This document shows, piece after piece, positions 1,257-11,483 of a stretch of 64,000 bases of DNA (position 1 is its first letter; every line of letters starts with the position of its first letter). Below the pieces are notes generated by a model. That model had not been told where the DNA came from and did no database searches. It was given only the letters and a program-made list of their open reading frames with translations. The position numbers and the translations under genes were made by a program. The stretch spans positions 62,001 to 126,000 of the IMG/VR virus record IMGVR_UViG_3300018004_000004. The stretch is one strand, 5' to 3'.

Positions 1257-1595
1257 CCCTCCAGCAGGCGCTCCCGCCTGTCGATGGAGGGAAATGGCCG
1301 CGACCTTAAGACGCGGCAACAGTGGAGCAGCGTAGAGGTCATTCCTCTCTGTGAACCACTCGAAATGAACGTGGCGGAATAGTTCGTCCTAGCTATACAA
1401 TAACGTCGGCAAGGCCCGGGCGGTAGCCTTAAAAAGCGCTGTCCGGTTGAATCAGGGCCGGGGTCAAGGCTGGGGGAAGTAAACGCGCGGGGATAAAGCG
1501 GGCTGGCCTTATGGTCAGTACTCATCGGAACCCGTGACCGTCGGTTGAGAAAAGGTCATTGCGTGGTGGAGACGGGAATCCACGCCGTTCATTTC
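1257..1595 (+). ncRNA. candidate large structured ncRNA, family unassigned
   Basis: No credible ORF. Hairpins at 1257-1291, 1298-1316 and 1321-1360. A perfect 10-bp long-range helix GAAATGAACG (1362-1371)/CGTTCATTTC (1586-1595) encloses further hairpins. Confidence 0.6.
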
Positions 1596-1609
1596 ATTTC
1601 ATTTTCTGT

Positions 1610-1698
1610 TGCGGGGTCGACTAGTCAGGCCGATGTCGCCAGTCTCATAAACTGGAACCGAAAGGGCACCGTGGGTTCGAATCCCACCTCCGCTACCA
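1610..1698 (+). tRNA. tRNA-Met(CAT), initiator-like acceptor with long variable arm
   Basis: Cloverleaf; anticodon arm CCAGT-CTCATAA-ACTGG; T arm GTGGG-TTCGAAT-CCCAC; encoded CCA; U1.U72 mismatch. Confidence 0.9.
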
Positions 1699-1712
1699 TC
1701 TTAGTTGTAAGC

Positions 1713-1784
1713 CTAGGGGTAGCTTAAGATCGAAAGCCCCGGATAGTACCGGGAGATACCGGACCGAGACCGGGCCCCTAAACC
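1713..1784 (+). ncRNA. non-canonical tRNA-like RNA (6-nt anticodon loop, no TTC) or tRNA pseudogene
   Basis: TAGGGG/CCCCTA acceptor; GCTT/AAGC D stem; CCCGG-ATAGTA-CCGGG; T arm CCGG-ACCGAGA-CCGG. Confidence 0.65.
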
Positions 1785-1799
1785 TTTAAGGAGACGACC

Positions 1800-1997
1800 A
1801 TGAAACGAGTCGCAACTGTAGTTGCTAATGATGGAAACACACGTACGAAAATCACGATCGAAGTGAACAACAAGGGACGTGATTTGACGCGCGACGAAGT
1901 GAAGCATGTAGTTGATCGCCTCACTGGTGACGTCTTCGCCGCGGTACAGAAGACTCCATACAGCAACTATCCCGTCACCGAAATCAAGGTGAAATAA
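1800..1997 (+). CDS. hypothetical protein
   Basis: AAGGAG RBS, ATG, 65 aa. Confidence 0.8.
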   Translation: MKRVATVVANDGNTRTKITIEVNNKGRDLTRDEVKHVVDRLTGDVFAAVQKTPYSNYPVTEIKVK

Positions 1998-2009
1998 GTT
2001 CTGCAGGCC

Positions 2010-2079
2010 GTAGGGTTGGTGCAATGGTTAGAATACCGGCTTTGGACCGGAGATATCCGTTCGATTCGGATACCCTGCA
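2010..2079 (+). tRNA. tRNA-Gln(TTG), degenerate copy without encoded CCA
   Basis: GTAGGGT/ACCCTGC acceptor; CCGG-CTTTGGA-CCGG; ATCCG-TTCGATT-CGGAT; weak D stem. Confidence 0.7.
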
Positions 2080-2090
2080 ATGAGATTAGT

Positions 2091-2137
2091 GCCGACAGCT
2101 GTCCCAGTGCAACATTGGCGGCCGTTCTGGGGTCGGC
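2091..2137 (+). other. intergenic stem-loop between tRNAs
   Basis: GCCGAC/GTCGGC closing stem with inner CCAGTG-CAA-CATTGG hairpin. Confidence 0.4.
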
Positions 2138-2150
2138 CTTGGATTTATGT

Positions 2151-2228
2151 GCCGTGTTAACTCAGTCCGGTCAGAGTGCCTCTCTTACAAAGAGGAAGTC
2201 CGAGGTTCAAATCCTTGACGCGGTACCA
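2151..2228 (+). tRNA. tRNA-Val(TAC)
   Basis: CCTCT-CTTACAA-AGAGG; GTTCAAATC; CCA end. Confidence 0.95.
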
Positions 2229-2244
2229 GATTTAAAGAGGGCAG

Positions 2245-2586
2245 ATGTTAGAGACCCCAAAAGAAGTGCTCGGTGAGGGATATCCTCTGCCAACAGAGCA
2301 GGCGCGTAAGGAAACAGCGCCCATCTGGGAACGAGCATTTGAGATACATGCGACGGCACATGTAGGTGATAGTCGCTTCCACGAAGGGAGCATGCTCCCA
2401 GTGAGAGGAGATGAGTATCACAACGGTACTCCCTACTGTGACTGTTACATGCGAGCCTGGCTGGAGTTTCATGATCCTGTAAAGATAGCAGAACCCCAGG
2501 CTATAGTGCGTGAGAAAGAACGACTACGCGAGCTAGAAGAAGAGAGACAGAAGTTCGCGATAGAATACTTTGAGAGAGTTGTATGA
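2245..2586 (+). CDS. hypothetical protein
   Basis: 113-aa ORF, GAGG RBS, ATGA overlap with the next gene. Confidence 0.7.
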   Translation: MLETPKEVLGEGYPLPTEQARKETAPIWERAFEIHATAHVGDSRFHEGSMLPVRGDEYHNGTPYCDCYMRAWLEFHDPVKIAEPQAIVREKERLRELEEERQKFAIEYFERVV

Positions 2587-3482
2587 TCATCGAGCAGGGT
2601 GAATGCAATCTTAAGGATTGGATCAAAGAGGTCGGCATGTCCGGCCGTATGCAGTCTGTCCTTATTGCTTCTTTCCGCGGCGCTGATTCAGACGACTCAC
2701 CGGAAGTAAAGAGAGTCGTACGTTGGATCCGTAAGCAGTGCATCAAGCTGAACAATCCAAGATCTCATTTCATGAGAGACACGGAGTTCATTGATATTAA
2801 AGCTCTTATGGATCAAGATGCCTGGCAATGGGATCGTTTGAAGACACACTTCTACGATCACCTGAAGCAGGCATTGGCAGTCATAGCATTCTTTCATCCT
2901 GATGAGTGGGTGCAGGCAAAAGCACTTAAGGCCTACCACGATCTGACAGAGCACGAGAGCATTGTGCCCGAGGACCGTGTAGACTTGGTCTCGCGATTGG
3001 CAGATACTAAACCGATCGCGCGCGGTGAATGGGTAGTGCAGGACTGGGTCCTGCAGTTGAGTGGTAAGATGCAATCAGCTTTGTTCTGCGCTATGCGCGG
3101 ATCCGATATCTCTACGGAAGATGAAGTCCGAAGATTAACACGCTGGCTGCGTTGGGTAGTCATGAGAGATGTAATGCCAGAGTCGCATTACATGAAAGAC
3201 AGAGAGTTTATGAGCTTAAAGGTCAGATTCGAAATGTATCCATCGGAGTGGGGTAACCTGCCGATTCACTTCCGGCACCACACCCGAGAAGCGCTCGAGA
3301 TCGTGGGATACATGCATCCGGATAAAGACATCCGTGAACGCGCTCTGGCCGCGTATGAAGATATTTGTAAGAAGTCTAAGGGCAAGCCAGAAACAAAGTC
3401 CATCCTGGTAAATCGTATGAAAGATGAGCCGGGCAGGACTGCTGATCCAAATCAGCAACGAACCAACCTTCCGGTAGCTTAA
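2583..3482 (+). CDS. phage protein made of two tandem copies of a ~135-aa helical domain
   Basis: Both halves share DW..SG(R/K)MQS...RG.D...EV.R..RW.R...SH(F/Y)M.D.EF...HF..H...AL......HPD...R(L/M).D. Confidence 0.85.
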   Translation: MIIEQGECNLKDWIKEVGMSGRMQSVLIASFRGADSDDSPEVKRVVRWIRKQCIKLNNPRSHFMRDTEFIDIKALMDQDAWQWDRLKTHFYDHLKQALAVIAFFHPDEWVQAKALKAYHDLTEHESIVPEDRVDLVSRLADTKPIARGEWVVQDWVLQLSGKMQSALFCAMRGSDISTEDEVRRLTRWLRWVVMRDVMPESHYMKDREFMSLKVRFEMYPSEWGNLPIHFRHHTREALEIVGYMHPDKDIRERALAAYEDICKKSKGKPETKSILVNRMKDEPGRTADPNQQRTNLPVA

Positions 3483-3485
3483 CAC

Positions 3486-3561
3486 TGGTAGGTGGTGCAA
3501 ATGGTAGTCACGCCGGGCCTTGAACCCGGAGATCCTGGTTCGAATCCAGGCCTACCAACCA
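3486..3561 (+). tRNA. tRNA-Gln(TTG) with C33
   Basis: CCGGG-CCTTGAA-CCCGG; CCTGG-TTCGAAT-CCAGG; CCA. Confidence 0.92.
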
Positions 3562-3562
3562 T

Positions 3563-3637
3563 GGGTTCGTAGCTTAAAGGTAGAGCAACCGCCTTTTAAG
3601 CGGTGGAATGCTGGTTCAAATCCAGCCGGACCCACCA
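3563..3637 (+). tRNA. tRNA-Lys(TTT)
   Basis: ACCGC-CTTTTAA-GCGGT; CCA. Confidence 0.95.
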
Positions 3638-3638
3638 C

Positions 3639-3718
3639 GCTCCATTAGCTCAGCGGAAACCAAGAGCACTCGGCTACGGACCGAGGGGTCGGGAGTTCGA
3701 ATCTCTCATGGAGCACCA
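3639..3718 (+). tRNA. tRNA-Arg(ACG)
   Basis: CTCGG-CTACGGA-CCGAG; CCA. Confidence 0.95.
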
Positions 3719-3726
3719 AGTTTCGC

Positions 3727-3802
3727 GGGCTTGTAGCTCAGACGGAAGAGCAGCGGAGTTCTAACCCGCAGGCAGAGAGTTCGAATCTCTCCAAGCTCGC
3801 CA
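3727..3802 (+). tRNA. tRNA-Arg(TCT)
   Basis: GCGGA-GTTCTAA-CCCGC (G32, A.C at 31:39); CCA. Confidence 0.9.
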
Positions 3803-3812
3803 AGATTTACGT

Positions 3813-3887
3813 TGCCTACTCGTTTAACTGGTAGGACGCCAGCCTCTGGAGCTGGATATGAAGGTTCGAGTCCTTCGAAGGCAACCA
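3813..3887 (+). tRNA. tRNA-Gln(CTG)
   Basis: CCAGC-CTCTGGA-GCTGG; CCA. Confidence 0.93.
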
Positions 3888-3898
3888 CATATTTACTA

Positions 3899-3973
3899 GC
3901 CATGGTAGCTCCAATGTAGAGCTGCGCACCTGTAATGCGCGGGTTGGGGGTTCAAGTCCCTCCCATGGCTCCA
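3899..3973 (+). tRNA. tRNA-Thr(TGT) with C33
   Basis: GCGCA-CCTGTAA-TGCGC; GCCATGG/CCATGGC acceptor, U73, CCA; D loop lacks GG. Confidence 0.92.
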
Positions 3974-3983
3974 CGAGGTCACA

Positions 3984-4196
3984 ATGAACCAAGGAAGACC
4001 AGCACCGAAGCAATGCCCGTCAGTGGGTCAAGGTGTCACCTTGGTTGCAGGCTACACCCAGATGATGCTGGGCGCCAGGGTGAACAAGACGTGGAACCCA
4101 ACTACAAGACAGTGGGAGTTCATGAGCCGGCCGGCCCTCACAGAAGGAACCAACGGCGGCAAGAGATTCGCATTTGGGCCATCTAAGCTGATCTAA
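3984..4196 (+). CDS. hypothetical protein
   Basis: GAGGT RBS, ATG, 70 aa, fills an inter-tRNA gap. Confidence 0.65.
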   Translation: MNQGRPAPKQCPSVGQGVTLVAGYTQMMLGARVNKTWNPTTRQWEFMSRPALTEGTNGGKRFAFGPSKLI

Positions 4197-4199
4197 GTA

Positions 4200-4208
4200 T
4201 GGTATAAT
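4200..4208 (+). promoter_or_regulatory. extended -10 promoter element TGGTATAAT
   Basis: Exact TGnTATAAT in an intergenic position; the same 9-mer recurs at 8367. Confidence 0.6.
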
Positions 4209-4214
4209 GGGTTT

Positions 4215-4379
4215 GTGTTCAACCCAATCTATCCGACCTGCTCTAAGTGGTGGCGCGCTGTTTTCCGGCTGCGCACCATAGAAAGAGATGGAAGCTTTCA
4301 GATACGCTGTAGATTGGTGAAATCAGATAAGTGTTGTCGGTTCTATTGGTTAGTTATACGTAGGCAACTACTATACTAA
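4215..4379 (+). CDS. possible leaderless small protein (54 aa)
   Basis: GTG 7 nt after TATAAT; MFNPIYPTCSKWWRAVFRLRT...LLY*. Confidence 0.35.
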   Translation: MFNPIYPTCSKWWRAVFRLRTIERDGSFQIRCRLVKSDKCCRFYWLVIRRQLLY

Positions 4380-4384
4380 TCAGG
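4368..4384 (+). promoter_or_regulatory. putative phage promoter motif CTACTATACTAATCAGG
   Basis: 17-mer identical to the reverse complement of 63212-63228; lies just upstream of tRNA-Gly. Confidence 0.6.
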
Positions 4385-4391
4385 GGTACGA

Positions 4392-4465
4392 GCGAGGTTG
4401 GTATAGTGGTAGCACGTGACCTTGCCAAGGTCGAGGCACCGGTTCGAATCCGGTACTTCGCTCCA
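4392..4465 (+). tRNA. tRNA-Gly(GCC)
   Basis: TGACC-TTGCCAA-GGTCG; U73; CCA. Confidence 0.95.
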
Positions 4466-4472
4466 GGATCTT

Positions 4473-4595
4473 ATGCTAGCTTATGCAATAACTTGCACTG
4501 TTCTAATGGCTGCTGTTTACTTCGCGCCATTCTGCAAGAAAGGGTTTCGACCCGACCAATCACCAAAGTACACGGTGGGTCCTCTTAAGGGATAA
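4473..4595 (+). CDS. small membrane peptide (40 aa)
   Basis: MLAYAITCTVLMAAVYFAPFCKKGFRPDQSPKYTVGPLKG*; exactly fills the gap between the two tRNA-Gly genes. Confidence 0.55.
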   Translation: MLAYAITCTVLMAAVYFAPFCKKGFRPDQSPKYTVGPLKG

Positions 4596-4604
4596 TCGGG
4601 ACCA

Positions 4605-4680
4605 GCGGCTGTGATGTTAACGGCCAGCATGTCTGCCTTCCAAGCAGAATGTATCGGTTCGAATCCGATTAGCCGCTCCA
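4605..4680 (+). tRNA. tRNA-Gly(TCC)
   Basis: TCTGC-CTTCCAA-GCAGA; U73; CCA. Confidence 0.95.
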
Positions 4681-4687
4681 AGCTCTC

Positions 4688-4772
4688 GAAGCACGGTAAG
4701 GGTCATGGCCCTACACGGACGCATACGGATGATGTACCATGAGCCGTCCGGCGCAGCCGCATTACGTGCTTC
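4688..4772 (+). ncRNA. candidate small multi-branched RNA (non-tRNA cloverleaf)
   Basis: GAAGCACG/CGTGCTTC closing stem; inner arms AGGGT/GCCCT, CGGACG/CGTCCG, GCG/CGC. Confidence 0.55.
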
Positions 4773-4776
4773 CCGG

Positions 4777-4853
4777 GCCTCCGTAGCTCAGCCTAGCAGA
4801 GCACCGGGCATCTAACCCGGGGGTCATCCGCGAAACACGGATCGGGGGCTCCA
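4777..4853 (+). ncRNA. non-canonical tRNA-like RNA (nominal TCT anticodon, A33, no D-loop GG, no TTC)
   Basis: All four stems pair (GCCTCCG/CGGGGGC, GCTC/GAGC, CCGGG/CCCGG, ATCCG/CGGAT) and CCA is encoded; loops are AGCCTAGCA, CATCTAA and CGAAACA. Confidence 0.8.
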
Positions 4854-4858
4854 CGATC

Positions 4859-5062
4859 TTGCCTCTGGCTCCTCGTAAGAGGGGTAGTTCAAAGCTCACA
4901 GGGGCGCCAAGTGTAGTAGATGTAATCCGAGTCGCCGATCTTGACGACCTTCAAAGTGAGGTACACCGATGTTCAAACAACATCGGCACCGCCATCTTCA
5001 TCATCGCCACTACGGAAGAGGGCTATATCTTCTACTGGAGTGGGAAGGTGACGGAGTGGTAG
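4859..5062 (+). CDS. hypothetical protein
   Basis: 67-aa ORF, TTG start, fills the gap. Confidence 0.45.
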   Translation: MPLAPRKRGSSKLTGAPSVVDVIRVADLDDLQSEVHRCSNNIGTAIFIIATTEEGYIFYWSGKVTEW

Positions 5063-5085
5063 TGTCTTCCTTAGGAGGAACGTTA

Positions 5086-5466
5086 ATGATTCAAGTATCA
5101 GACAGTTTGCTTTCAAATCTCGCGTTGGCACTCGTTGACCAGCTCGGTTTCCCAGCCAATCTGGATGGCGTAACTGCAGTATGGTCGATCGACAACGCGA
5201 ATGTTGGTTCCATTGTGGGCAACAACTTCGCAGCTGTGTTCACACCTGGAACAGATTTGACCGACGTCGGAACCATCACAGCAGCCGTGAGCATCAATGG
5301 CACGTTTGCTTTCAATGTAACCGTCCAGGTCCAGGTTGTATCTGGTGCACCAGTGAGTGGTACAATCACACTGAGTGGCACTTCTCCTCTGCCGGCCGCT
5401 GCACCCGCAGCCCCAGCAGCTCCAGCAGCCCCTGCAGCCCCAGCGGCAACAGGCGCAACAGCCTAA
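5086..5466 (+). CDS. beta-rich (Ig-like) protein with (PAA)n tail
   Basis: TAGGAGG RBS before ATG 5086; alternating beta-strand pattern with WSIDN; C-terminal PAAAPAAPAAPAAPAAPAA. Confidence 0.8.
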   Translation: MIQVSDSLLSNLALALVDQLGFPANLDGVTAVWSIDNANVGSIVGNNFAAVFTPGTDLTDVGTITAAVSINGTFAFNVTVQVQVVSGAPVSGTITLSGTSPLPAAAPAAPAAPAAPAAPAATGATA

Positions 5467-5479
5467 AGTAGTCCTAAGT

Positions 5480-5506
5480 CCTGAGGGGTGAGTAAGGCCC
5501 CTCAGG
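5480..5506 (+). other. stable hairpin after the gene (terminator or processing signal)
   Basis: CCTGAGGGG/CCCCTCAGG 9-bp stem, no U tract. Confidence 0.5.
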
Positions 5507-5527
5507 CAGAGATTAGAAGTATAAGAT

Positions 5528-5660
5528 TGGTAGCGCGAAAAGCGACAGGTAGCCCCTCTGTATACCGAGGGCAGGTGCTGAATCGTCCCAGACGTGGGGT
5601 GATTTGGAAGTTGGTCCACCGGAAGGCCAGCGCGGTTGTCGTGTAAGCCGTGCGCTATTG
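5528..5660 (+). ncRNA. candidate ~130-nt multi-branched RNA
   Basis: TAGCGC/GCGCTA and GCGACAG/TTGTCGT nested closing stems enclose three hairpins (5552-5572, 5581-5604, 5610-5631). Confidence 0.6.
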
Positions 5661-5678
5661 ATATTCCAAGAGGTTGCT

Positions 5679-5810
5679 ATGTGCACAATGAAGTGTCCTG
5701 TGTGCGGTAAGCAGGTTAGCAAACCTCAGCCTAAAGACGAGTTCGTCTGCCCATGTGGTTGGCGATCGGAAGCAAAAAAGAACAACGGAGAACATCATGA
5801 AGAACAGTAA
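5679..5810 (+). CDS. small zinc-ribbon protein
   Basis: GAGGT RBS; MKCPVCGK...FVCPCGW. Confidence 0.7.
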   Translation: MCTMKCPVCGKQVSKPQPKDEFVCPCGWRSEAKKNNGEHHEEQ

Positions 5811-5952
5811 CGGGTCTAAGACACCTCCAGCACAACTTAGCAAGACCCCGTATATCGGCGACCCGATCTTCGCGTCACCGACCACACACAAGGCAAAGGC
5901 CATCAAGCCTACTCAGCCGAAGGTGGCAAACTCGGGCGTCAAAAAGGGCTAA
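5797..5952 (+). CDS. small Lys/Pro-rich basic protein
   Basis: GGAG RBS; MKNSNGSKTPPAQLSKTPYIG...GVKKG. Confidence 0.7.
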   Translation: MKNSNGSKTPPAQLSKTPYIGDPIFASPTTHKAKAIKPTQPKVANSGVKKG

Positions 5953-5965
5953 GCCGGCAACGGTA

Positions 5966-6088
5966 ATGGCCCTCAGAAAGAAAGCGAAGAAGGCCTCATG
6001 GTTTAACCATGGGGCCACTCGACTAGCCGCGGCTACAGTACAAATGTACAAGCCGCAGAAGCCATTACCGCAACCCAAAGCAAAGTAA
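5966..6088 (+). CDS. small basic peptide (40 aa)
   Basis: MALRKKAKKASWFNHGATRLAAATVQMYKPQKPLPQPKAK*. Confidence 0.55.
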   Translation: MALRKKAKKASWFNHGATRLAAATVQMYKPQKPLPQPKAK

Positions 6089-6121
6089 TACTCCCACCTT
6101 TGGCTTGCCGTCCTGGCAGGC

Positions 6122-6127
6122 TATAAT
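6122..6127 (+). promoter_or_regulatory. -10 element TATAAT upstream of tRNA-Asn
   Basis: Consensus hexamer, intergenic; -35 weak. Confidence 0.45.
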
Positions 6128-6145
6128 ACAACATAGAGATTCTAC

Positions 6146-6221
6146 TGGAGTGTGGCTCAACCGGTACAGCATCTGGCCGTTAACCAGACACTTGGGGGTT
6201 CGAGTCCCTCTGCTCCAGCCA
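6146..6221 (+). tRNA. tRNA-Asn(GTT) with C33
   Basis: TCTGG-CCGTTAA-CCAGA; G73; CCA. Confidence 0.92.
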
Positions 6222-6226
6222 AGCTT

Positions 6227-6625
6227 ATGAAAGAGACGCCCAAAGTAGAGAAGCGCATATACGTTGTCCTCCCTTCATTCGTCATATCACCGACGATGTT
6301 CCTAAGAGAGGTCATTCCGATGTCCTGCGGCCGCTGTATAGCACAGGCATGTCATGTGGTATCGAAGCTGAAGCTGAGACTTAAACTGGATCCCGATGAA
6401 GAACACACAACCATCGTCCTCAAAGTCGTTGACAGCGACGAGCTGGAAAAAGTCCGTGATAAGATCTCACGCTCGCGTCTTCCGTGGGAAGAGTTTCGCG
6501 ATACCAACCCCGGGTACTATAAGACTGAAAAGTCCATCCTAACCGCGGTTGCTGTTTGTTGTTCGAGAAAGAAAGGTAAGTCACTGTTCCATGGCTACGA
6601 TGCCTGGCAGTGTGATGTGGAGTAA
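6227..6625 (+). CDS. peptidyl-tRNA hydrolase, Pth2 family
   Basis: MSCGRCIAQACH, IVLKVVDSDELE, EFRD and LTAVA match Pth2 motifs (MS.GK..AQ..HA; K.VLK.....EL; I.D; T...GP). The true start is ATG 6227, after tRNA-Asn. Confidence 0.82.
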   Translation: MKETPKVEKRIYVVLPSFVISPTMFLREVIPMSCGRCIAQACHVVSKLKLRLKLDPDEEHTTIVLKVVDSDELEKVRDKISRSRLPWEEFRDTNPGYYKTEKSILTAVAVCCSRKKGKSLFHGYDAWQCDVE

Positions 6626-6634
6626 ACTCGTGAA

Positions 6635-6720
6635 GAACGATACAATGGGCGGATGCATTCGATTGCTAGGCCTGCTTAGTTAGCAGGCCCGCGGACTGCC
6701 GTCCCCGGACCTTGTAGTTC
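6635..6720 (+). ncRNA. candidate rod-like structured RNA
   Basis: Nested GAAC/GTTC, TACAA/TTGTA, GGGCGG/CCGTCC and terminal GGCCTGCT/AGCAGGCC helices. Confidence 0.4.
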
Positions 6721-6723
6721 AAG

Positions 6724-6802
6724 GCGCTGGTGGACAAAATGGCAAAGCCGCCTCGTTCAGACCGAGGAGATTTTGTGGGTTCGAATCCCACCCAGCGCAC
6801 CA
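6724..6802 (+). tRNA. tRNA-Leu(CAG) lacking the long variable arm
   Basis: CCTCG-TTCAGAC-CGAGG; Leu-type D arm; variable region only AGATTTT; A73; CCA. Confidence 0.88.
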
Positions 6803-6815
6803 AGTTTATCGATGT

Positions 6816-6904
6816 GCTGGAGTGGCGTAACTGGCAGCCGCGCAGGGCTCAAGCCCCTGTGGCCCTAGAAAGCCGTGAGAGTTCGAATCTCTCCTTCAGC
6901 ACCA
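6816..6904 (+). tRNA. tRNA-Leu(CAA)
   Basis: CAGGG-CTCAAGC-CCCTG; long variable arm; CCA. Confidence 0.95.
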
Positions 6905-6905
6905 A

Positions 6906-6990
6906 GTACCTGTGCTGAAACTGGTAGCCAGCCGCGGTTGAGAGCCGCGTGCCGCAAGGCGTGGAGGTTCGAATCCTCTCAGGTACACCA
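6906..6990 (+). tRNA. tRNA-Leu(GAG)
   Basis: CGCGG-TTGAGAG-CCGCG; GCC-GCAA-GGC variable arm; CCA. Confidence 0.95.
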
Positions 6991-6995
6991 AGATT

Positions 6996-7313
6996 ATGAT
7001 ACCAACGCTTCTCAAGATCGCAGTGGGTATTCTGATTCCGGCCGCAACAGCAGACGGAGTCAGCACAGCTCACTTTCTGAGGAAAGGTTACACTGAAGCA
7101 GATCGAATCATGATCTGGATCTACGGCACCGATGATCCTTCAGTGAAGAGGATGTGGGTTCGTAGCAGCATTGCCGTAGCACTCGAGGTCCTTGTAGCAG
7201 GTATTGCAGCGCATTACTGGACACCTGCAGGATACGGATTTGGAGTTGGGTATCTGTGCCAGGCAGCTTATCACGTCTACTGTACAGTGAACAACTATAG
7301 GAACGTGCCATGA
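6996..7313 (+). CDS. small multi-pass membrane protein (DUF5658-like)
   Basis: Three hydrophobic segments; D..ST...L.KG..E motif shared with 7496-7849. Confidence 0.7.
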   Translation: MIPTLLKIAVGILIPAATADGVSTAHFLRKGYTEADRIMIWIYGTDDPSVKRMWVRSSIAVALEVLVAGIAAHYWTPAGYGFGVGYLCQAAYHVYCTVNNYRNVP

Positions 7314-7381
7314 AAGGCGGACAGAGCAGCGGAGTCGGTTATCGTAGCGCTTAATGAGCGCACGGAGAGGTGCGCTTCCAT

Positions 7382-7471
7382 GGAGGCGCAGCAGAGACGG
7401 GGATCTGCACTTGGCCGTAACCCAAGGTCCCAACGGGACTAGAGAAGGTTCAAATCCTTCCGTCTCCACCA
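7382..7471 (+). tRNA. tRNA-Tyr(GTA) with C33 and C8
   Basis: GGAGGCG/CGTCTCC acceptor; CTTGG-CCGTAAC-CCAAG; GTCCC/GGGAC variable arm; A73; CCA. Confidence 0.9.
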
Positions 7472-7495
7472 AGTTTAGAAGTACAAGGAGCAAAT

Positions 7496-7849
7496 ATGTT
7501 TGATCCATCGACAGATCCAAGAACGTGGCCCAATCAACCGGGCTTCTGGGAATCACTCGGTATCTTCGTTCTGTATGCTTACATGCTCGTTGCTATCCTG
7601 GGCGACACGTATTACACAGGGGTCGGACTGGCAAAGGGATTGAAGGAAATGAATCCTATCAATCGCTGGCTCTTCCCCAAGTTGGGTCAAGCATTGACTT
7701 GTTTTGTTGAAGCCGCGGCAATCACAGTAGTAGGTGGAGTCTTCATGGCCTATAGTATGCCGCTGGCTTATGGTTATTGGGGACTCATCGCAGCCCTCGA
7801 AACCTGGATGGTTTATCGTAATCGCAAGATCCTAGGATTGAGTTTGTAA
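7496..7849 (+). CDS. small multi-pass membrane protein (DUF5658-like)
   Basis: AAGGAG RBS; GDTYYTGVGLAKGLKEMNPINRWLF motif; three TM segments. Confidence 0.8.
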   Translation: MFDPSTDPRTWPNQPGFWESLGIFVLYAYMLVAILGDTYYTGVGLAKGLKEMNPINRWLFPKLGQALTCFVEAAAITVVGGVFMAYSMPLAYGYWGLIAALETWMVYRNRKILGLSL

Positions 7850-7895
7850 TGACGCGCGCACTAGAGCCACGACCCGAACGACCGTAAAAGGTCAC

Positions 7896-7969
7896 CGGGG
7901 TGTGTTCTAGTGGTAGGATCCATGCGTCGGAAGCATGGGGCGGAGGTTCGATTCCTCCCACCCCGACCA
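7896..7969 (+). tRNA. tRNA-Pro(CGG) with G32 and A37
   Basis: CATGC-GTCGGAA-GCATG; C1-G72, A73; CCA. Confidence 0.92.
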
Positions 7970-7978
7970 GATTTCCGT

Positions 7979-8053
7979 GGGGCAGTGGCGCAACGGGAGC
8001 GCAGATGCTTTGCAAGCATAAGGTTGTGGGTTCGATTCCCATCTGCTCCACCA
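7979..8053 (+). tRNA. tRNA-Ala(TGC)
   Basis: G3.U70; loop TTTGCAA; CCA. Confidence 0.95.
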
Positions 8054-8063
8054 AGGATTGACA

Positions 8064-8276
8064 ATGATCATCGAATCATACGTAACTGAAGTAGTAGATA
8101 CCGACACGAAGCAGAAGAGAGCTTTTGTCGGTGTAGTTGGTGGCGAAGTACTGTTGGATGTTCCCTTCAAGGATACCGATAACGAGAATCTGATCAAGAC
8201 TCTCGTATGCGCTATCAGGGTTCTCGAACAGAAGCTGGTAGATGCTGGCCAGCCGCCATTTGGTGGTATAGTTTAA
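8064..8276 (+). CDS. hypothetical protein
   Basis: AAGGA RBS; 70 aa; fills the tRNA gap. Confidence 0.7.
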   Translation: MIIESYVTEVVDTDTKQKRAFVGVVGGEVLLDVPFKDTDNENLIKTLVCAIRVLEQKLVDAGQPPFGGIV

Positions 8277-8279
8277 CGC

Positions 8280-8357
8280 AGGCCGGTCGTTTAGCCCGGT
8301 CCAGGACCTCGGTCTCCAAAACCGATGACGGTGGTTCAAATCCATCCTGGCCTGCCA
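8280..8357 (+). tRNA. tRNA-Trp(CCA)
   Basis: TCGGT-CTCCAAA-ACCGA; G73; CCA. Confidence 0.95.
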
Positions 8358-8366
8358 AAGGATTTG

Positions 8367-8375
8367 TGGTATAAT
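8367..8375 (+). promoter_or_regulatory. extended -10 promoter element TGGTATAAT
   Basis: Exact TGnTATAAT upstream of the Ser/Ser/Phe tRNA group. Confidence 0.6.
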
Positions 8376-8438
8376 AAAAACATGAACGATACAGCCAACT
8401 CGAGTAGTAGAAGCTCATCACGATCTACCCGTGTATAC

Positions 8439-8528
8439 GGAGGGTTGGCTGAGTTTGGAAAGGCGCCAGGTTGCTAACCTGAGGCCTGGTGAAAGCCAGC
8501 GTAGGTTCAAATCCTACACCCTCCGCCA
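8439..8528 (+). tRNA. tRNA-Ser(GCT)
   Basis: Loop TTGCTAA; long variable arm; G73; CCA. Confidence 0.95.
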
Positions 8529-8534
8529 AGTTTA

Positions 8535-8623
8535 GGAGGGCAGCGCTGAATGGTCGGCAACGGTCCCGAAAACCGAGACTCGTCGAAAGGCGAGACAGAG
8601 TTCGATTCTCTGGCCCTCCTCCA
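8535..8623 (+). tRNA. tRNA-Ser(CGA) with C33, A8 and U73
   Basis: GGAGGGC/GCCCTCC; CGGT-CCCGAAA-ACCG; long variable arm CTCGTC-GAAA-GGCGAG; CCA. Confidence 0.88.
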
Positions 8624-8625
8624 AA

Positions 8626-8699
8626 CCCGCGGTCGTTCAATGGTAGGACCCCTGACTGAAGATCAGGAGATGATGGTTCGAATCCATCCCAAGGGACCA
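8626..8699 (+). tRNA. tRNA-Phe(GAA), two acceptor-stem mismatches, G37
   Basis: CCTGA-CTGAAGA-TCAGG; CCCGCGG/CCAAGGG acceptor; CCA. Confidence 0.88.
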
Positions 8700-8706
8700 C
8701 AAGTTT

Positions 8707-8877
8707 ATGAGTAGTACAGAAGATCTGATTTACAGGCTGCGCAAGCGCGCTGAGATACGAAGGCAGATAACTACACGCAAGAGCGTACAAGAAGGAAAGC
8801 CTGATCGTATCGCCGATCTTCTGGAAGAAGCAGCCAATGAGCTGCAAAGATTATTGGATTTGACCTGTAGTAGATGA
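8707..8877 (+). CDS. small conserved-type phage protein (56 aa), absent from the ORF track
   Basis: MSSTEDLIYRLRKRAEIRRQITTRKSVQEGKPDRIADLLEEAANELQRLLDLTCSR*. Confidence 0.8.
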   Translation: MSSTEDLIYRLRKRAEIRRQITTRKSVQEGKPDRIADLLEEAANELQRLLDLTCSR

Positions 8878-9002
8878 GTAGTCCTTGTATTCTGGCTCTG
8901 CCATTCGGAAATAGCAGAGCGCGTCAATCGGCACGGTGTTGTACAATCCGTGGTGGCGCTCACGGATTACAACGAGACTAATCATCTAGGTCAGTTGTTC
9001 TT

Positions 9003-9096
9003 AGGTCTGCAGGAGCTGTAGTCACCACTGCATAAGCTGGTGCCCCCACATTACGGGGGAGAGCTGGCGTCGCCTTTGAGTGCTACAGTTAGACCT
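9003..9096 (+). ncRNA. candidate rod-like structured RNA with internal bubble
   Basis: AGGTCT/AGACCT; AGCTGTAG(T)CAC/GTGCTACAGTT bulged helix; terminal CCCCC/GGGGG hairpin. Confidence 0.5.
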
Positions 9097-9107
9097 TCGT
9101 ATTTCGC

Positions 9108-9186
9108 GGTGATATGGGACAGTCTGGCCTACTCCGCTCCCCTGTCACGGGAAACCTCGCCGGTTCAAATCCGGCTATCACCGCCA
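9108..9186 (+). tRNA. tRNA-Asp(GTC)
   Basis: Loop CTGTCAC; G73; CCA. Confidence 0.93.
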
Positions 9187-9187
9187 A

Positions 9188-9262
9188 GGCCCTATCGTCT
9201 ATGGGATAGGACTCCGGCTTCTCAAGCCGGCAACCCGGGTTCGATTCCCGGTGGGGTCACCA
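9188..9262 (+). tRNA. tRNA-Glu(CTC)
   Basis: CCGGC-TTCTCAA-GCCGG; CCA. Confidence 0.95.
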
Positions 9263-9296
9263 GTTTAACTTAGTCAAGGTCGGAGGACCAAGTACT

Positions 9297-9743
9297 ATGA
9301 GTAATGAAAAGAAAGACGCTACGCTTGGTATGTCACACGGTACGGCTACAAATAGATTACGTAAGCAGATAATGTTTAGATTACTGCAACGTTTGAATGA
9401 GAACTTTTGCTTTCGTTGTGGATGTGAAATACAATCAGTAGATGATCTAAGCATCGAACATAAGCAGCCTTGGGAAGGTATCAGTGCTGACTTATTCTGG
9501 GATGAAGAGAACATTGCCTTTTCTCACTTGCGATGCAATAGACCAGATAGACCAAGCGGTAGAAATGCGAATGCCAAGATTCCACCAATAGAAGGTGTAT
9601 GCTGGTGCGTTCCTGGCGATCATTTTGCTCCAGTCGATAACTTCTACAAGAATGAAAGTAGACCGACAGGATTACAGAACTGGTGCAAGGATCATAGACC
9701 TCCTCGATTAGGAGGCTACCACAAGTTTGCGATGCTCTGTTAG
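9297..9743 (+). CDS. HNH endonuclease with C-terminal Zn-binding domain
   Basis: CFRCG...LSIEHKQPW...NIAFSHLRCN; C-terminal CWC..DHF...NFYKN.SRPTGLQNWCKDH. Confidence 0.88.
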   Translation: MSNEKKDATLGMSHGTATNRLRKQIMFRLLQRLNENFCFRCGCEIQSVDDLSIEHKQPWEGISADLFWDEENIAFSHLRCNRPDRPSGRNANAKIPPIEGVCWCVPGDHFAPVDNFYKNESRPTGLQNWCKDHRPPRLGGYHKFAMLC

Positions 9744-9930
9744 TCAGCCGTGTATACGGAACATCATCGCCGATACGGTGACGTTAATCAACAGGAGTGT
9801 AACGAGCCTCGAAAACTCGTTTCGTCTGAAAAACCTCCGACCCTTGAGTTTAGATGTGTCGAGCGAGGACACATCGCATGGCTATCTGGGCGCCTCGAGC
9901 CGAAGGGTAGCCAGAGTTTAGCGGGACTAA
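9740..9930 (+). ncRNA. candidate ~190-nt multi-hairpin RNA directly after the HNH gene
   Basis: TTAGTC/GACTAA closing stem; hairpins CCGTG/TACGG, CATCG/CGGTG, AACGAG/CTCGTT, GATGTGTC/GACACATC, TGGCTATC/GGTAGCCA. Confidence 0.6.
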
Positions 9931-9940
9931 GTAGCTAGTG

Positions 9941-9990
9941 CTTTCCCCATCGGCTGCTACCTTGCCGTCGGCGGCATGGCCAGGGGAAAG
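9941..9990 (+). other. intergenic hairpin
   Basis: CTTTCCCC/GGGGAAAG closing stem with inner TGCCG/CGGCA. Confidence 0.45.
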
Positions 9991-10035
9991 GATCCTGTTC
10001 GCGACTGGATCTCACCCGCGGGTTTAGGAGACACA

Positions 10036-10194
10036 ATGTTTACACTTCTCAAGGTTGTAGTGGAAGGGATTCTTACCCTTCTTGTTTTCTTTGGCGGCAT
10101 GAAGTTCCAGCAACACTACCCTAACTTCATTGCGCGCGTTGATAGTATCCTAGCATGGATCAAGAACATCCTGCCAGGTACAACGAAGTCTTAA
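10036..10194 (+). CDS. small membrane protein (52 aa)
   Basis: TAGGAG RBS; MFTLLKVVVEGILTLLVFFGGMKF. Confidence 0.75.
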   Translation: MFTLLKVVVEGILTLLVFFGGMKFQQHYPNFIARVDSILAWIKNILPGTTKS

Positions 10195-10196
10195 GT

Positions 10197-10271
10197 GCCC
10201 AAGTCGTACATGGGTTAGGATCCCAATCTTTCAAGTTGGGGAACAGAGTTCGAGTCTCTGCTCGGGTACCA
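10197..10271 (+). tRNA. tRNA-Glu(TTC)
   Basis: CCAAT-CTTTCAA-GTTGG; CAGAG-TTCGAGT-CTCTG; CCA. Confidence 0.9.
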
Positions 10272-10272
10272 A

Positions 10273-10422
10273 ATGAACTTCAAGCGAAAGCGACCAAAGA
10301 ACGCACGCAGTGGCTGCCTAATGTGCAAGCCACATAAGATGAATGGAATCAAACATACTTACCATGTCAAAGGTATCAGAGGCAAGGTGAACATCAAGGA
10401 TTTAGAACGGAGAGTGGCCTAG
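10273..10422 (+). CDS. small basic CxxC protein (49 aa), absent from the ORF track
   Basis: MNFKRKRPKNARSGCLMCKPHKMNG...; the 3' end overlaps tRNA-Pro. Confidence 0.7.
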   Translation: MNFKRKRPKNARSGCLMCKPHKMNGIKHTYHVKGIRGKVNIKDLERRVA

Positions 10423-10486
10423 TCCGGTTTAAGGCGCGTGCCTTGGGCGCACGAGATCGAGAGTTCAAATCTCTCCTCTCCGACCA
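10408..10486 (+). tRNA. tRNA-Pro(TGG)
   Basis: CGTGC-CTTGGGC-GCACG; CCA. Confidence 0.95.
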
Positions 10487-10501
10487 TTTTGGAGCAACAC
10501 A

Positions 10502-10930
10502 ATGATGGATCTATTGCATAAGTTCTTACTGGGTGGCGAGATCTTCGCCGGCGCCGTAGCAAGCCTGGTATTTGTTTCTGTAGCAATAGGATCCATTAGA
10601 CACTGGGTGGACAAGGGCGCCAAGCCATTTGTCTATCCTGATGACGTACCTCTGGCAGAAGCCAAGGCAGCAGCAGAACCATACTGGCACAGAGCGCTGG
10701 TAGCTTTGGACATCTTCCTGAACGTGGTAGTCTTGTTTGGAGCCCAGGATGAGACGATGTCGACTCATGCCTGGCGCGCGGCGGTAGCCGGCAAGCTCTG
10801 GGGCAAGCTCATGAACCTGTGGCTCAATGGTTTTCAGCCTCAGCATGGCCCTCAGGCAGCTTCCGGCGATCTCGAACGAGCATTGGCTCGTGTTGCAGTA
10901 CTCATGAAAGCTTTGGGCTTATCTAAGTAA
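10502..10930 (+). CDS. membrane-anchored hypothetical phage protein
   Basis: GGAG RBS; N-terminal TM; ALD...N....G..DET.S..A.R motif. Confidence 0.75.
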   Translation: MMDLLHKFLLGGEIFAGAVASLVFVSVAIGSIRHWVDKGAKPFVYPDDVPLAEAKAAAEPYWHRALVALDIFLNVVVLFGAQDETMSTHAWRAAVAGKLWGKLMNLWLNGFQPQHGPQAASGDLERALARVAVLMKALGLSK

Positions 10931-11133
10931 TGCTGGCCTTCTGGAAGTACGTGCATCGCTGCACGAACAAAGAACGAACCCGAATCATCATCGGGTATCC
11001 TTCAGCAGTCTGCAGTATGCACAGCGAAACAGACTACGGCCAGATGTCTATCAGCGGATTGTTCTATAGGCTAACAAGATCCAAGAAGATCTTTAAGCCT
11101 GCTGTTCCGGACTTTGCAACTAGTCCTTTTTGA
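10930..11133 (+). CDS. hypothetical protein
   Basis: TAATG overlap with the upstream gene; 67 aa. Confidence 0.5.
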   Translation: MLAFWKYVHRCTNKERTRIIIGYPSAVCSMHSETDYGQMSISGLFYRLTRSKKIFKPAVPDFATSPF

Positions 11134-11137
11134 TCTT

Positions 11138-11483
11138 GGGGACGTCCCGGTTTCGACAGATAGCGGAACGACCTGAATGCATGCCGGTGCCTGACGACCG
11201 TAACTGTTGGAAAACTTTAACTGCAGAGTTTGAAGAACTGCCGTTGGCTGCTTAAAGCAGCCACGTCCTACCTGACGATGCCTATTGATTGGGCTAGGGC
11301 GTAAACTAGTGGGCTAAGCTTCCCGGGTCAGCTCCCTGCGAGCCGGGCGGATGAAAACCAAGAAGGGATACTGGGACCTCACTTGTCCGGTCTGTAGGCC
11401 CCTGAGAAACCGAACGGAATAAGCATGTAGTATTCATAAGTAATGCTTTCTGGACACGGGTTCAACTCCCGTCGTCTCCACCA
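11138..11483 (+). ncRNA. ssrA: tmRNA; tag ORF 11223-11255 = (A)AEFEELPLAA*
   Basis: 5' GGGGACGTCCCGGTTTCGAC; 3' GACACGGGTTCAACTCCCGTCGTCTCCACCA with G3.U70; TAACT before the GCA resume codon; stop codon inside a hairpin. Confidence 0.96.

Follow-up and report, generated by a model that had tools for sequence, protein, structure and literature searches.

Animal mitochondria use a single tRNA-Met for initiation and elongation, and work on E. coli mutants showed that an initiator tRNA with a U1:A72 pair can act in elongation while it is still formylated. The initiator tRNA is also a target of toxins, being cut by enteric VapC. All initiator tRNAs that have been described possess, to our knowledge, a short variable loop of class I. 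The determinants of bacterial initiators have been summarised (PMC5389676). In E. coli, the middle pair G30:C40 of the three anticodon-stem G:C pairs, or G30 alone, is sufficient and essential, and the flanking pairs add fitness (PMC5389676). Natural initiators with a degenerate set of these pairs (3GC), namely au/GC/GC, GC/GC/gu and au/GC/gu, occur in alpha-proteobacteria and mycoplasmas (PMC5389676). Host defences directed against tRNAs include a bacterial Schlafen that cuts the anticodon arm of the Met(CAU), Ile(CAU) and Lys(UUU) tRNAs (PMC13056530). Mycobacteriophage tRNAs with variants of the anticodon loop were proposed to escape host tRNA nucleases (PMC10264068), and a further case of nuclease escape is tRNA-Lys of phage T5 against PARIS (PMC11464382).

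The window analysed here, 64,000 nucleotides in length, comprises bases 62001-126000 of a 215,395-bp IMG/VR virus record of an uncultured phage. Pfam searches of the phage genome identified a portal protein, a primase, a ribonucleotide reductase, a ligase and an SNF2 helicase, thus the record represents a tailed jumbo phage. ARAGORN and Rfam revealed 32 tRNA genes for all 20 amino acids together with a tmRNA; the 32 include a tRNA-Tyr at window positions 7382-7471 that was found by Rfam and, at a relaxed setting only, by ARAGORN. The same phage DNA was present in more than 15 metagenomes of peat, wetland and soil sampled between 2014 and 2020, and the tRNA stretch studied here occurred in them without variants. 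The phage is a live, widespread entity.

Within the tRNA array of the phage, ARAGORN called a tRNA-Met(cat) at exactly 1610-1698, and the stretch reached 44.9 bits with the Rfam family RF00005, the gathering score of which is 29 (E 2.5e-6, referring to the whole window). RF00005 aligned the surplus bases as an insertion into the variable loop and flagged 1:72 and 13:22 as non-pairs. The single-sequence fold was a cloverleaf with a small additional hairpin, its z-score of -0.46 being uninformative, and covariance model R1, which was built from the subfamily described below, scored the tRNA with 100.4 bits. The features are collected in Table 1. Those on which the earlier note had based its proposal of an initiator-like tRNA with a long variable arm (U1.U72, G2-C71, C3-G70, A11-U24, A73, the CCAGT/ACTGG stem and the CC-GAAA-GG hairpin) are all present in the sequence. 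We consider the gene to be probably a functional, phage-encoded tRNA-Met of the initiator type, belonging to a conserved lineage of phages and mobile elements in which the variable loop carries a short GNRA-capped hairpin.

Table 1 Features of the tRNA gene and its upstream region (positions in the window; paired positions in tRNA numbering)
Feature	Position	Strand	Description	Basis
tRNA(CAU), probable initiator-type tRNA-Met	1610-1698	+	89 nt, extra variable arm, encoded CCA	ARAGORN, RF00005, covariance model R1, identical copies in other metagenome contigs
Acceptor stem	1610-1616 (5' strand), 1688-1694 (3' strand)	+		sequence, RF00005 alignment
Acceptor pairs		+	U1.U72 (unpaired), G2:C71, C3:G70, G4:C69, G5:C68, G6.U67, G7:C66	sequence
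A73	1695	+		sequence
Encoded CCA	1696-1698	+		sequence
D arm	1619-1637	+	G10:C25, A11:U24, C12:G23, U13.U22; 3-bp stem, 13.22 mismatch	sequence, RF00005 alignment
D loop	within 1619-1637	+	11 nt; A14, G15, G18G19	
Anticodon arm	1639-1655	+	CCAGU/ACUGG, strands 1639-1643 and 1651-1655	sequence, ARAGORN
Anticodon-stem pairs	within 1639-1655	+	29:41 A:U, 30:40 G:C, 31:39 U:A	sequence
Anticodon loop		+	CUCAUAA; anticodon CAU at 1646-1648	sequence, ARAGORN
Variable region	1656-1670	+	15 nt, AA-CC-GAAA-GG-GCACC	sequence
Variable-region hairpin	1658-1665	+	CC-GAAA-GG	sequence
Linker	within 1656-1670	+	GCACC, 3' of the hairpin; last C is the partner of G15	
T arm	1671-1687	+	GUGGG / UUCGAAU / CCCAC	sequence, RF00005 alignment
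Upstream hairpin and T-rich tract	1561-1609	+	GCGTGG ... CCACGC, 13-nt loop, then T-rich tract reaching the 5' end of the tRNA	sequence

Judged from its sequence, the hairpin with T-rich tract upstream of the tRNA may be a terminator or a processing signal of the upstream unit. The hairpin is also kept in the relative L368, and a T-rich motif directly 5' of the tRNA, TTTCTGT or TTTCAAT, is common to members of the subfamily. A simple scan for promoters and terminators made no call at the tRNA and missed this hairpin, the loop of which is too long. Comparison of the neighbouring open reading frames to PHROGs and Pfam gave no clues to the host or to the function of the tRNA, and a neighbouring protein of 299 amino acids, used as query, matched in near-identical phages only.

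Identical copies of the tRNA were detected in other metagenome contigs by an exact-word scan. A structural pattern consisting of CUCAUAA, a long spacer and the T loop matched at least 117 stretches in viral contigs, and the matches listed contained at least 77 distinct CAU tRNAs with variable regions of 13-22 nt. Among these listed matches, 48 of the 77 have both G2:C71 and C3:G70, and position 1:72 in these 48 is occupied by U.U (20), C.A (7) or A.A (5), strong pairs being rare. Within the same listed set, A73 is present in 40 of these 48 long-armed initiator-like tRNAs (40/47 in the count for the wider family), nearly every variable region forms a hairpin, and a GAAA cap closes the hairpin in 20 of the 77 long-armed CAU tRNAs. 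BLAST searches against cultured phages gave no match for the tRNA with its flanks, and for the tRNA alone only matches to tRNA-Met of ordinary length or partial matches to tRNA-Ser; E. coli genomes gave no match. In prokaryotic genome bins, nearly all listed matches of the long pattern were located in dense arrays of 10-30 tRNA genes. Archaeal matches, which were initiators containing introns, were excluded. The array of the isolate Prevotella sp. KH2C16 adjoins two phage-type integrases and a HipA-like kinase; this strain and Xanthocytophaga flavus each have several ordinary CAU tRNAs and one additional, long-armed copy.

A narrower pattern, derived from the D arm of the tRNA, yielded 18 distinct close homologues from viral and metagenome contigs. 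In this subfamily the arm is 2-4 bp long and followed by a linker of 3-5 nt. The GAAA loop is invariant (18/18) on a stem of changing composition: of the two pairs proximal to the loop, the first is CG in 14, GC in three and AU in one member, the second GC in nine, CG in eight and UA in one. Three members have the canonical C1.A72. A first covariance-model search had matched tRNAs of all kinds, and its mixed alignment was set aside; the alignment used here comprises the 30 best matches, i.e. the closest relatives, of a model built from the 18 homologues. Standard pairs filled 97.1% of the pair cells of these 30 sequences in comparison to 74% in shuffles, and none of 500 shuffles reached 97.1%. 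Compensatory changes were observed in all five helices. The arm helix (helix 4) was paired to 94.9%, and both modelled arm pairs covaried with changes on both sides. U8, A14, G18G19, U33, the CAU anticodon and the T loop were invariant in the 30 relatives, A11:U24 and G30:C40 were present in 30/30, G2:C71 in 28/30 and C3:G70 in 27/30, with U.G in the other three. Position 1:72 was unpaired in 14 relatives, U:A in 12, U.G in two and a strong pair in two, and the pair 31:39, U:A in the tRNA of the window, was U.G in most relatives. The covariation together with the pairing frequency in the relatives shows the extra arm to be a structural element that is under selection. The gene truly belongs to a family that is conserved, widespread and associated with phages. 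The earlier note had reasoned that its proposal would fall if homologues lacked the arm; the arm was present in every homologue found.

Of the three peculiarities ascribed to the tRNA, the arm, the missing GGG/CCC of the anticodon stem and the U.U at 1:72, the arm alone is truly unusual. A scan of viral contigs for initiator-like CAU tRNAs with a variable loop of any length presented 120 unselected stretches, and two of them (about 2%) had the long arm. Among 126 CAU tRNAs in newly fetched loci, none had a length of at least 82 nt. Despite this rarity, the long arm was encountered on initiator-like tRNA(CAU) in more than 100 viral contigs. The other two peculiarities turned out to be the norm among phage initiator-like tRNAs. 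All three G:C pairs were retained by 16 of 85 short-armed tRNAs and missing as a set in 69, a frequency not distinguishable from that of the long-armed tRNAs (11/47; Fisher p = 0.65), and U.U was the second most frequent combination at 1:72 among the 85. The missing GGG/CCC, shared by most short-armed phage initiators, therefore does not single out the gene in the window. That the GGG/CCC is absent is literally true, yet the middle pair G30:C40 is retained, as it is in 83/85 short-armed and 45/47 long-armed phage initiator-like tRNAs. The missing set does not disqualify the tRNA as initiator, since G30:C40 alone sustains E. coli (PMC5389676). The particular stem of this tRNA, au/GC/ua, is not among the natural variants given in PMC5389676.

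The tRNA combines the CAU anticodon with the tRNA-fMet features of a 1:72 without Watson-Crick pairing, G2:C71, C3:G70, A73 and A11:U24; it lacks the three consecutive G:C pairs and the class I variable loop of 4-5 nt. All formyltransferase features of the acceptor and D stems are thus present, and they are conserved in the relatives, in agreement with the initiator-like character first proposed. An elongator tRNA-Met has a stable G1:C72 and a pyrimidine11:purine24 pair, where the tRNA of the window has U.U and A11:U24. Both elongator features were found in the only other CAU tRNA of the phage (genome positions 207675-207752; G1:C72, C11:G24, normal 5-nt variable loop), which gave only a weak match to tRNA-Arg in BLAST searches of annotated E. 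coli genomes. This second tRNA probably does the elongator job in the window phage, but it could instead be a tRNA-Ile2, as AUA accounts for 14% of the Ile codons of the phage. A peptide deformylase gene (81.8 bits) lies near it at genome positions 208733-209179; genes for a formyltransferase (Fmt), TilS or MetRS were not found in the phage genome. For the window phage, a specialised initiator is the more likely and most economical reading because of the U.U mismatch, the partner tRNA with G1:C72 and the phage's own deformylase. A comparable pair is seen in the loci L369 and L374, where a long-armed C1.A72 tRNA stands next to a typical elongator-like tRNA-Met. CAU tRNAs of the same arrays that have a strong or a G.U pair at 1:72 nearly always carry C11:G24 or U11:A24, with one exception.

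Three relatives are complete by CheckV, carry terminal repeats and were examined as whole genomes (G001, G002, G004). Their arrays of 32, 31 and 26 tRNAs cover 20, 20 and 18 amino acids, respectively. Each of them has the long-armed tRNA as its only CAU tRNA, in a fixed slot between Ile(GAU) and Gly(UCC) and with U1:A72 as a weak pair, whereas AUA is served by a tRNA-Ile(UAU). That the sole Met tRNA of an array for 20 amino acids is long-armed would suit an elongator or a dual role at least equally and raises a dual role, which the earlier note did not contain. In these complete relatives it is a serious possibility that the long-armed tRNA serves as both initiator and elongator in a mitochondrion-like manner. 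As a general reading, a general-purpose or dual tRNA-Met, part of which is formylated and part delivered to EF-Tu as in animal mitochondria, or a tRNA acting mainly as elongator, appears unlikely to us. The weak U:A pair of the three sole Met tRNAs is in favour of it, as it is the pair with which the mutant E. coli initiator can elongate. Arrays of at least 15 tRNAs fit as well: with an elongator-like partner present, the long-armed tRNA was mismatched at 1:72 in 8/8 cases, and without a partner it was weakly paired in 9/12, which belong mostly to one subfamily. This association is only suggestive, since it rests largely on one related subfamily with few independent events and partial loci may be missing their partner tRNAs. 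The copy of the window phage itself has a true U.U mismatch and a G1:C72 partner, which argues against a dual role there.

Short- and long-armed initiator-like tRNAs occur together in nine of the arrays (L357, L006, L013, L062, L091, L108, L121, L286 and L377), and this coexistence suggests that the long-armed form may do something other than act as a plain initiator. It would also suit a function outside of translation, such as titrating a tRNA-directed defence protein of the host as its decoy or sponge, as a primer or regulatory tRNA-like RNA, or no function at all in a decaying copy. A further point for such a reading comes from L368, a close relative with 88-92% identity and a syntenic organisation. 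Its homology to the window phage breaks inside the T arm, and immediately behind the tRNA there is an insertion of about 450 bp. The T arm is a different one and shows compensatory changes; the 3' half that was replaced results in U1:A72 and lacks an encoded CCA. Contigs of public metatranscriptomes cover 1300-1510 and 5092-5318 and leave the tRNA uncovered, which is uninformative for a tRNA. Against these points stand the purifying selection on all helices and universally conserved positions, with compensatory changes, the conservation of the MetRS and Fmt identity elements, which a mere decoy need not keep, and the fixed slot Ile(GAU) - Met - Gly(UCC) wherever the tRNA is the sole Met tRNA. 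A non-translational role is therefore quite improbable. Evidently, tRNA halves have been exchanged, and to this limited extent the term chimeric, used in the earlier note, is justified; as the description of a singular re-engineering event it does not hold, the architecture being rather an old and diversified trait of the lineage.

The earlier note had also allowed for a tRNA-Ile2, in which the host TilS converts C34 to lysidine and AUA is read as Ile. Such a tRNA would share the CAU anticodon and A37/A38 with the tRNA of the window, AUA is in use by the phage (8.2 per 1000 codons), and ARAGORN cannot separate Met from Ile2. The acceptor stem, however, is initiator-like (xGCGGGG with 1:72 unpaired), in contrast to Ile2 and its strong G1:C72 stem, TilS is missing from the phage genome, and C12:G23 and A29:U41 differ from what we take to be the IleRS elements. 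The complete relatives of the same subfamily contradict the alternative most directly: they possess a tRNA-Ile(UAU) for AUA and no other CAU tRNA, therefore the long-armed tRNA has to be a Met tRNA and an Ile2 identity is very unlikely. Equally far-fetched is a class II body with the identity of Leu, Ser or Tyr that would place a residue other than Met at AUG, in the manner of the nematode V-arm tRNAs and allo-tRNAs, for which the long variable region, the 3-bp D stem with its 13.22 mismatch, the A73 shared with tRNA-Leu and the tRNA-Ser genes of phiCbK-like phages among the best partial BLAST matches in cultured phages might be quoted, but which is opposed by the short arm of just 2-4 bp with a 3-5-nt linker (the arms of the phage's own Leu, Ser and Tyr tRNAs are longer), by A73 instead of the G73 of Ser, by a CAU anticodon that rules out bacterial Tyr and is the dominant MetRS determinant, by the normal 7/5 architecture of acceptor and T stems, and by G15:C48 and A11:U24, which are presumably not the Leu pattern.

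For the initiator-type tRNA-Met, the path from gene to protein is most likely the following. The tRNA would be produced from the phage array and trimmed by host enzymes, its CCA being encoded. By the established identity rules, the host MetRS would charge it via CAU, A73, G2:C71 and C3:G70. Formylation would fall to the host enzyme, as the phage has no own Fmt, and is expected from the unpaired 1:72 in combination with G2:C71, C3:G70 and A11:U24. The P site of the 30S subunit would accept the tRNA through G30:C40, and the peptide deformylase encoded by the phage would then process the fMet proteins. Our best guess, held with low confidence, is that the arm alters the recognition by tRNA-directed host nucleases or other tRNA-binding proteins and leaves MetRS, Fmt and the ribosome undisturbed.

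Asn, Thr, Lys, Ile and Cys tRNAs from arrays of the same kinds carry similar arms, often of the form stem-GAAA-stem with a CAYC-like linker. The cultured phage phiCbK has a tRNA-Lys(CUU) of 87 nt with an AGC-GAAA-GCU arm; a long-armed CAU tRNA was not found in phiCbK. Long arms were enriched in tRNAs for ANN codons in arrays selected for a long-armed CAU tRNA (p = 1e-6), but neither the unselected sample (p = 0.09) nor the genome bins (p = 1.0) showed this at a significant level, so that we treat this enrichment as a lead and not as a result. As arms are present on other phage tRNAs and nucleases of the anticodon arm are known, a counter-defence or labelling role is plausible. We tentatively propose that the arm is an armour or a label on phage tRNAs, the initiator as well as Asn, Thr, Lys, Ile and Cys tRNAs, which would protect them from tRNA-cleaving or tRNA-modifying defence enzymes of the host or make them selectively visible to a phage factor, with charging and ribosome function intact, and, as a linked reading, that the long-armed tRNA works as a mitochondrion-like dual initiator/elongator in relatives where it is the sole Met tRNA; this proposal is possible rather than likely. 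The earlier note had considered that the tRNA may be toxin-resistant or relaxed in its initiation properties, both of which are speculative readings. The stem beside the known VapC cut site differs in the tRNA of the window, and equally so in short-armed phage initiators. Since the anticodon loop is the canonical, unchanged CUCAUAA, an escape through mutations of the loop, as proposed in PMC10264068, is not directly applicable. During translocation, long arms must reposition around the A-site finger (PMC11231383). An arm might be more easily tolerated on an initiator, because the initiator never passes through the A site.

In the open-access literature searched, a long variable arm was not described for any initiator or Met tRNA, be it from phages or from another source, though such an absence is not a proof, and the main text of PMC10264068 does not use the word 'variable'. 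The arm is a recurrent and conserved design in the tRNA gene clusters of phages, apparently undescribed so far, and not a one-off. With a conserved and covarying arm, the initiator-type tRNAs would represent a structural variant that is new for an RNA among the most constrained in biology; the arm recurs in more than 100 contigs of phages as well as in mobile arrays of tRNA genes in cultured Bacteroidota. The phages also offer a natural test of the features required for an initiator: they nearly always keep G30:C40 and discard the flanking G:C pairs, which matches the genetics of E. coli. Further, the family may give a clue to the ways in which phages shield their tRNAs from the growing number of tRNA-targeting defences, and might provide orthogonal initiator scaffolds for synthetic biology. 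If the arm proves to be neutral baggage, what remains is a curiosity in the evolution of phage tRNAs.

Among the known systems, the animal mitochondrial tRNA-Met has its parallel in the complete relatives, whose sole Met tRNA is a CAU tRNA weakly paired at 1:72; the mitochondrial tRNA belongs, however, to another domain of life without sequence relation, and the window phage has a second CAU tRNA. With the phage tRNAs for which an escape from nucleases was proposed or shown (PMC10264068, PMC11464382) the tRNA of the window shares that it is the phage copy of a tRNA species attacked by defences. Those cases rest on substitutions in the anticodon loop, whereas here the loop is canonical and the changes are found in the stem and in the added arm. 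A helical extra arm in the variable region and a shortened D stem are likewise present in the class II tRNAs (Leu, Ser, Tyr) as well as in V-arm tRNAs with unexpected anticodons, such as nematode nev-tRNAs and allo-tRNAs. The phage arm is much shorter, with 2-4 bp, is capped by a GNRA loop and has a longer single-stranded linker; acceptor and T stems are a normal 7/5, and the identity elements point to Met and formylation instead of Leu or Ser. The natural initiators with a degenerate 3GC (PMC5389676) show the same pattern as the phage initiator-like tRNAs, a variation of the first and third pairs around a constant G30:C40. The cellular representatives keep a purine-pyrimidine third pair and have no extra arm, in contrast to the pyrimidine-purine U:A or U.G and the arm of the phage tRNA. 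In comparison to bacterial tRNA-fMet, the phage tRNA has U.U and not C.A at 1:72, the middle G:C pair only, a U13.U22 mismatch and a hairpin-forming variable region of 15 nt in place of a 5-nt loop. With the E. coli tRNA-fMet (metZWV/metY) it has in common the CUCAUAA loop, the lack of a Watson-Crick pair at 1:72, the acceptor pairs G2:C71, C3:G70, G4:C69 and G5:C68, A73, A11:U24 and G30:C40.

Loss of the classical three G:C pairs is general among phage initiator-like tRNAs. Among 85 phage initiator-like tRNAs(CAU) with an ordinary variable loop, from an unselected viral sample (L129-L245) and from loci among the matches listed (L005-L121), the classical three G:C pairs were gone in 69, and G30:C40 was retained in 83. 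At 1:72 of phage initiator-like tRNAs, U.U, A.A, A.C and C.U mismatches were as common as C.A.

Hairpin extra arms were also present on phage-array tRNAs for Asn, Thr, Lys, Ile and Cys, which normally have short loops (loci L009, L046, L098, L107 and L124 among others). In arrays that had been chosen because they hold a CAU tRNA with a long arm, 13 of 51 Asn tRNAs carried such a hairpin; the four readers of ANN codons pooled reached 30/193 versus 14/383 for the other class I tRNAs. Overlong tRNA-Lys genes occur in the cultured phage phiCbK. On contigs unrelated to one another, tRNA-Ile(UAU) genes with a long arm shared the conserved motif YAGAUNAG in the loop of that arm and had odd D and T arms as well, which suggests that they form a distinct, recognisable class.

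The window phage possesses a near-complete translation kit. Twenty-five tRNAs and a tmRNA are packed into about 10 kb (window 1610-11483), and the genome-wide total of 32 tRNAs covers all 20 amino acids. The tRNA-Leu(CAG) is unusually short for class II, the converse of the long-armed tRNA-Met. An antisense tRNA-Arg call in the array is probably false. A second small cluster (Ile, Leu, Lys, Met(CAU), Cys) includes a gene for peptide deformylase; its distance to the phage's second CAU tRNA is about 1 kb.

Coordinates of features in the window phage and in other loci
Feature	Position	Remarks
tmRNA	window 11138-11483	tag AEFEELPLAA
tRNA-Tyr(GUA)	window 7382-7471	not called by ARAGORN at default settings
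antisense 'tRNA-Arg(tcg)' call	window 3502-3574	overlaps two sense-strand tRNAs
tRNA-Leu(CAG)	window 6724-6802	79 nt, variable region 9 nt
peptide deformylase gene	genome G000:C1:208733-209179, outside window; ORF L398:4715-5434	PF01327, 81.8 bits
insertion in L368	L368 reverse complement 2641-3094	versus window 1693-1702
tRNA-Lys genes, phiCbK	NC_019405.1 50139-50323 (L399 867-1051)	87 and 91 nt
long-armed tRNA-Ile(UAU)	L098 4202-4291; L122 6648-6736	also L185, L198, L045, L087, L090, L281

Metatranscriptome contigs were identical to the phage at window 1300-1510 and 5092-5318. The former stretch held no convincing ORF; just downstream of it, a hairpin with a T-rich tract (1561-1609) abuts the long-armed tRNA-Met. 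The syntenic relative L368, with 88-92 % identity, has an insertion of about 450 bp immediately 3' of this tRNA, and the tRNA's T arm and 3' acceptor strand have given way to different ones. The insert looks like an element that entered the 3' end of the tRNA, carrying its own copy of that end.

Several Prevotella genomes have in common an array of eight tRNAs (Ser, Ser, Phe, Tyr, Trp, long-armed Met, His, Cys; L295, L312, L313, L323, L329, L330). In Prevotella sp. KH2C16 (L295, NZ_FOOW01000001.1), the array adjoins two integrases of the phage type as well as a HipA-like toxin kinase, and is therefore a mobile element that has integrated in cultured bacteria.
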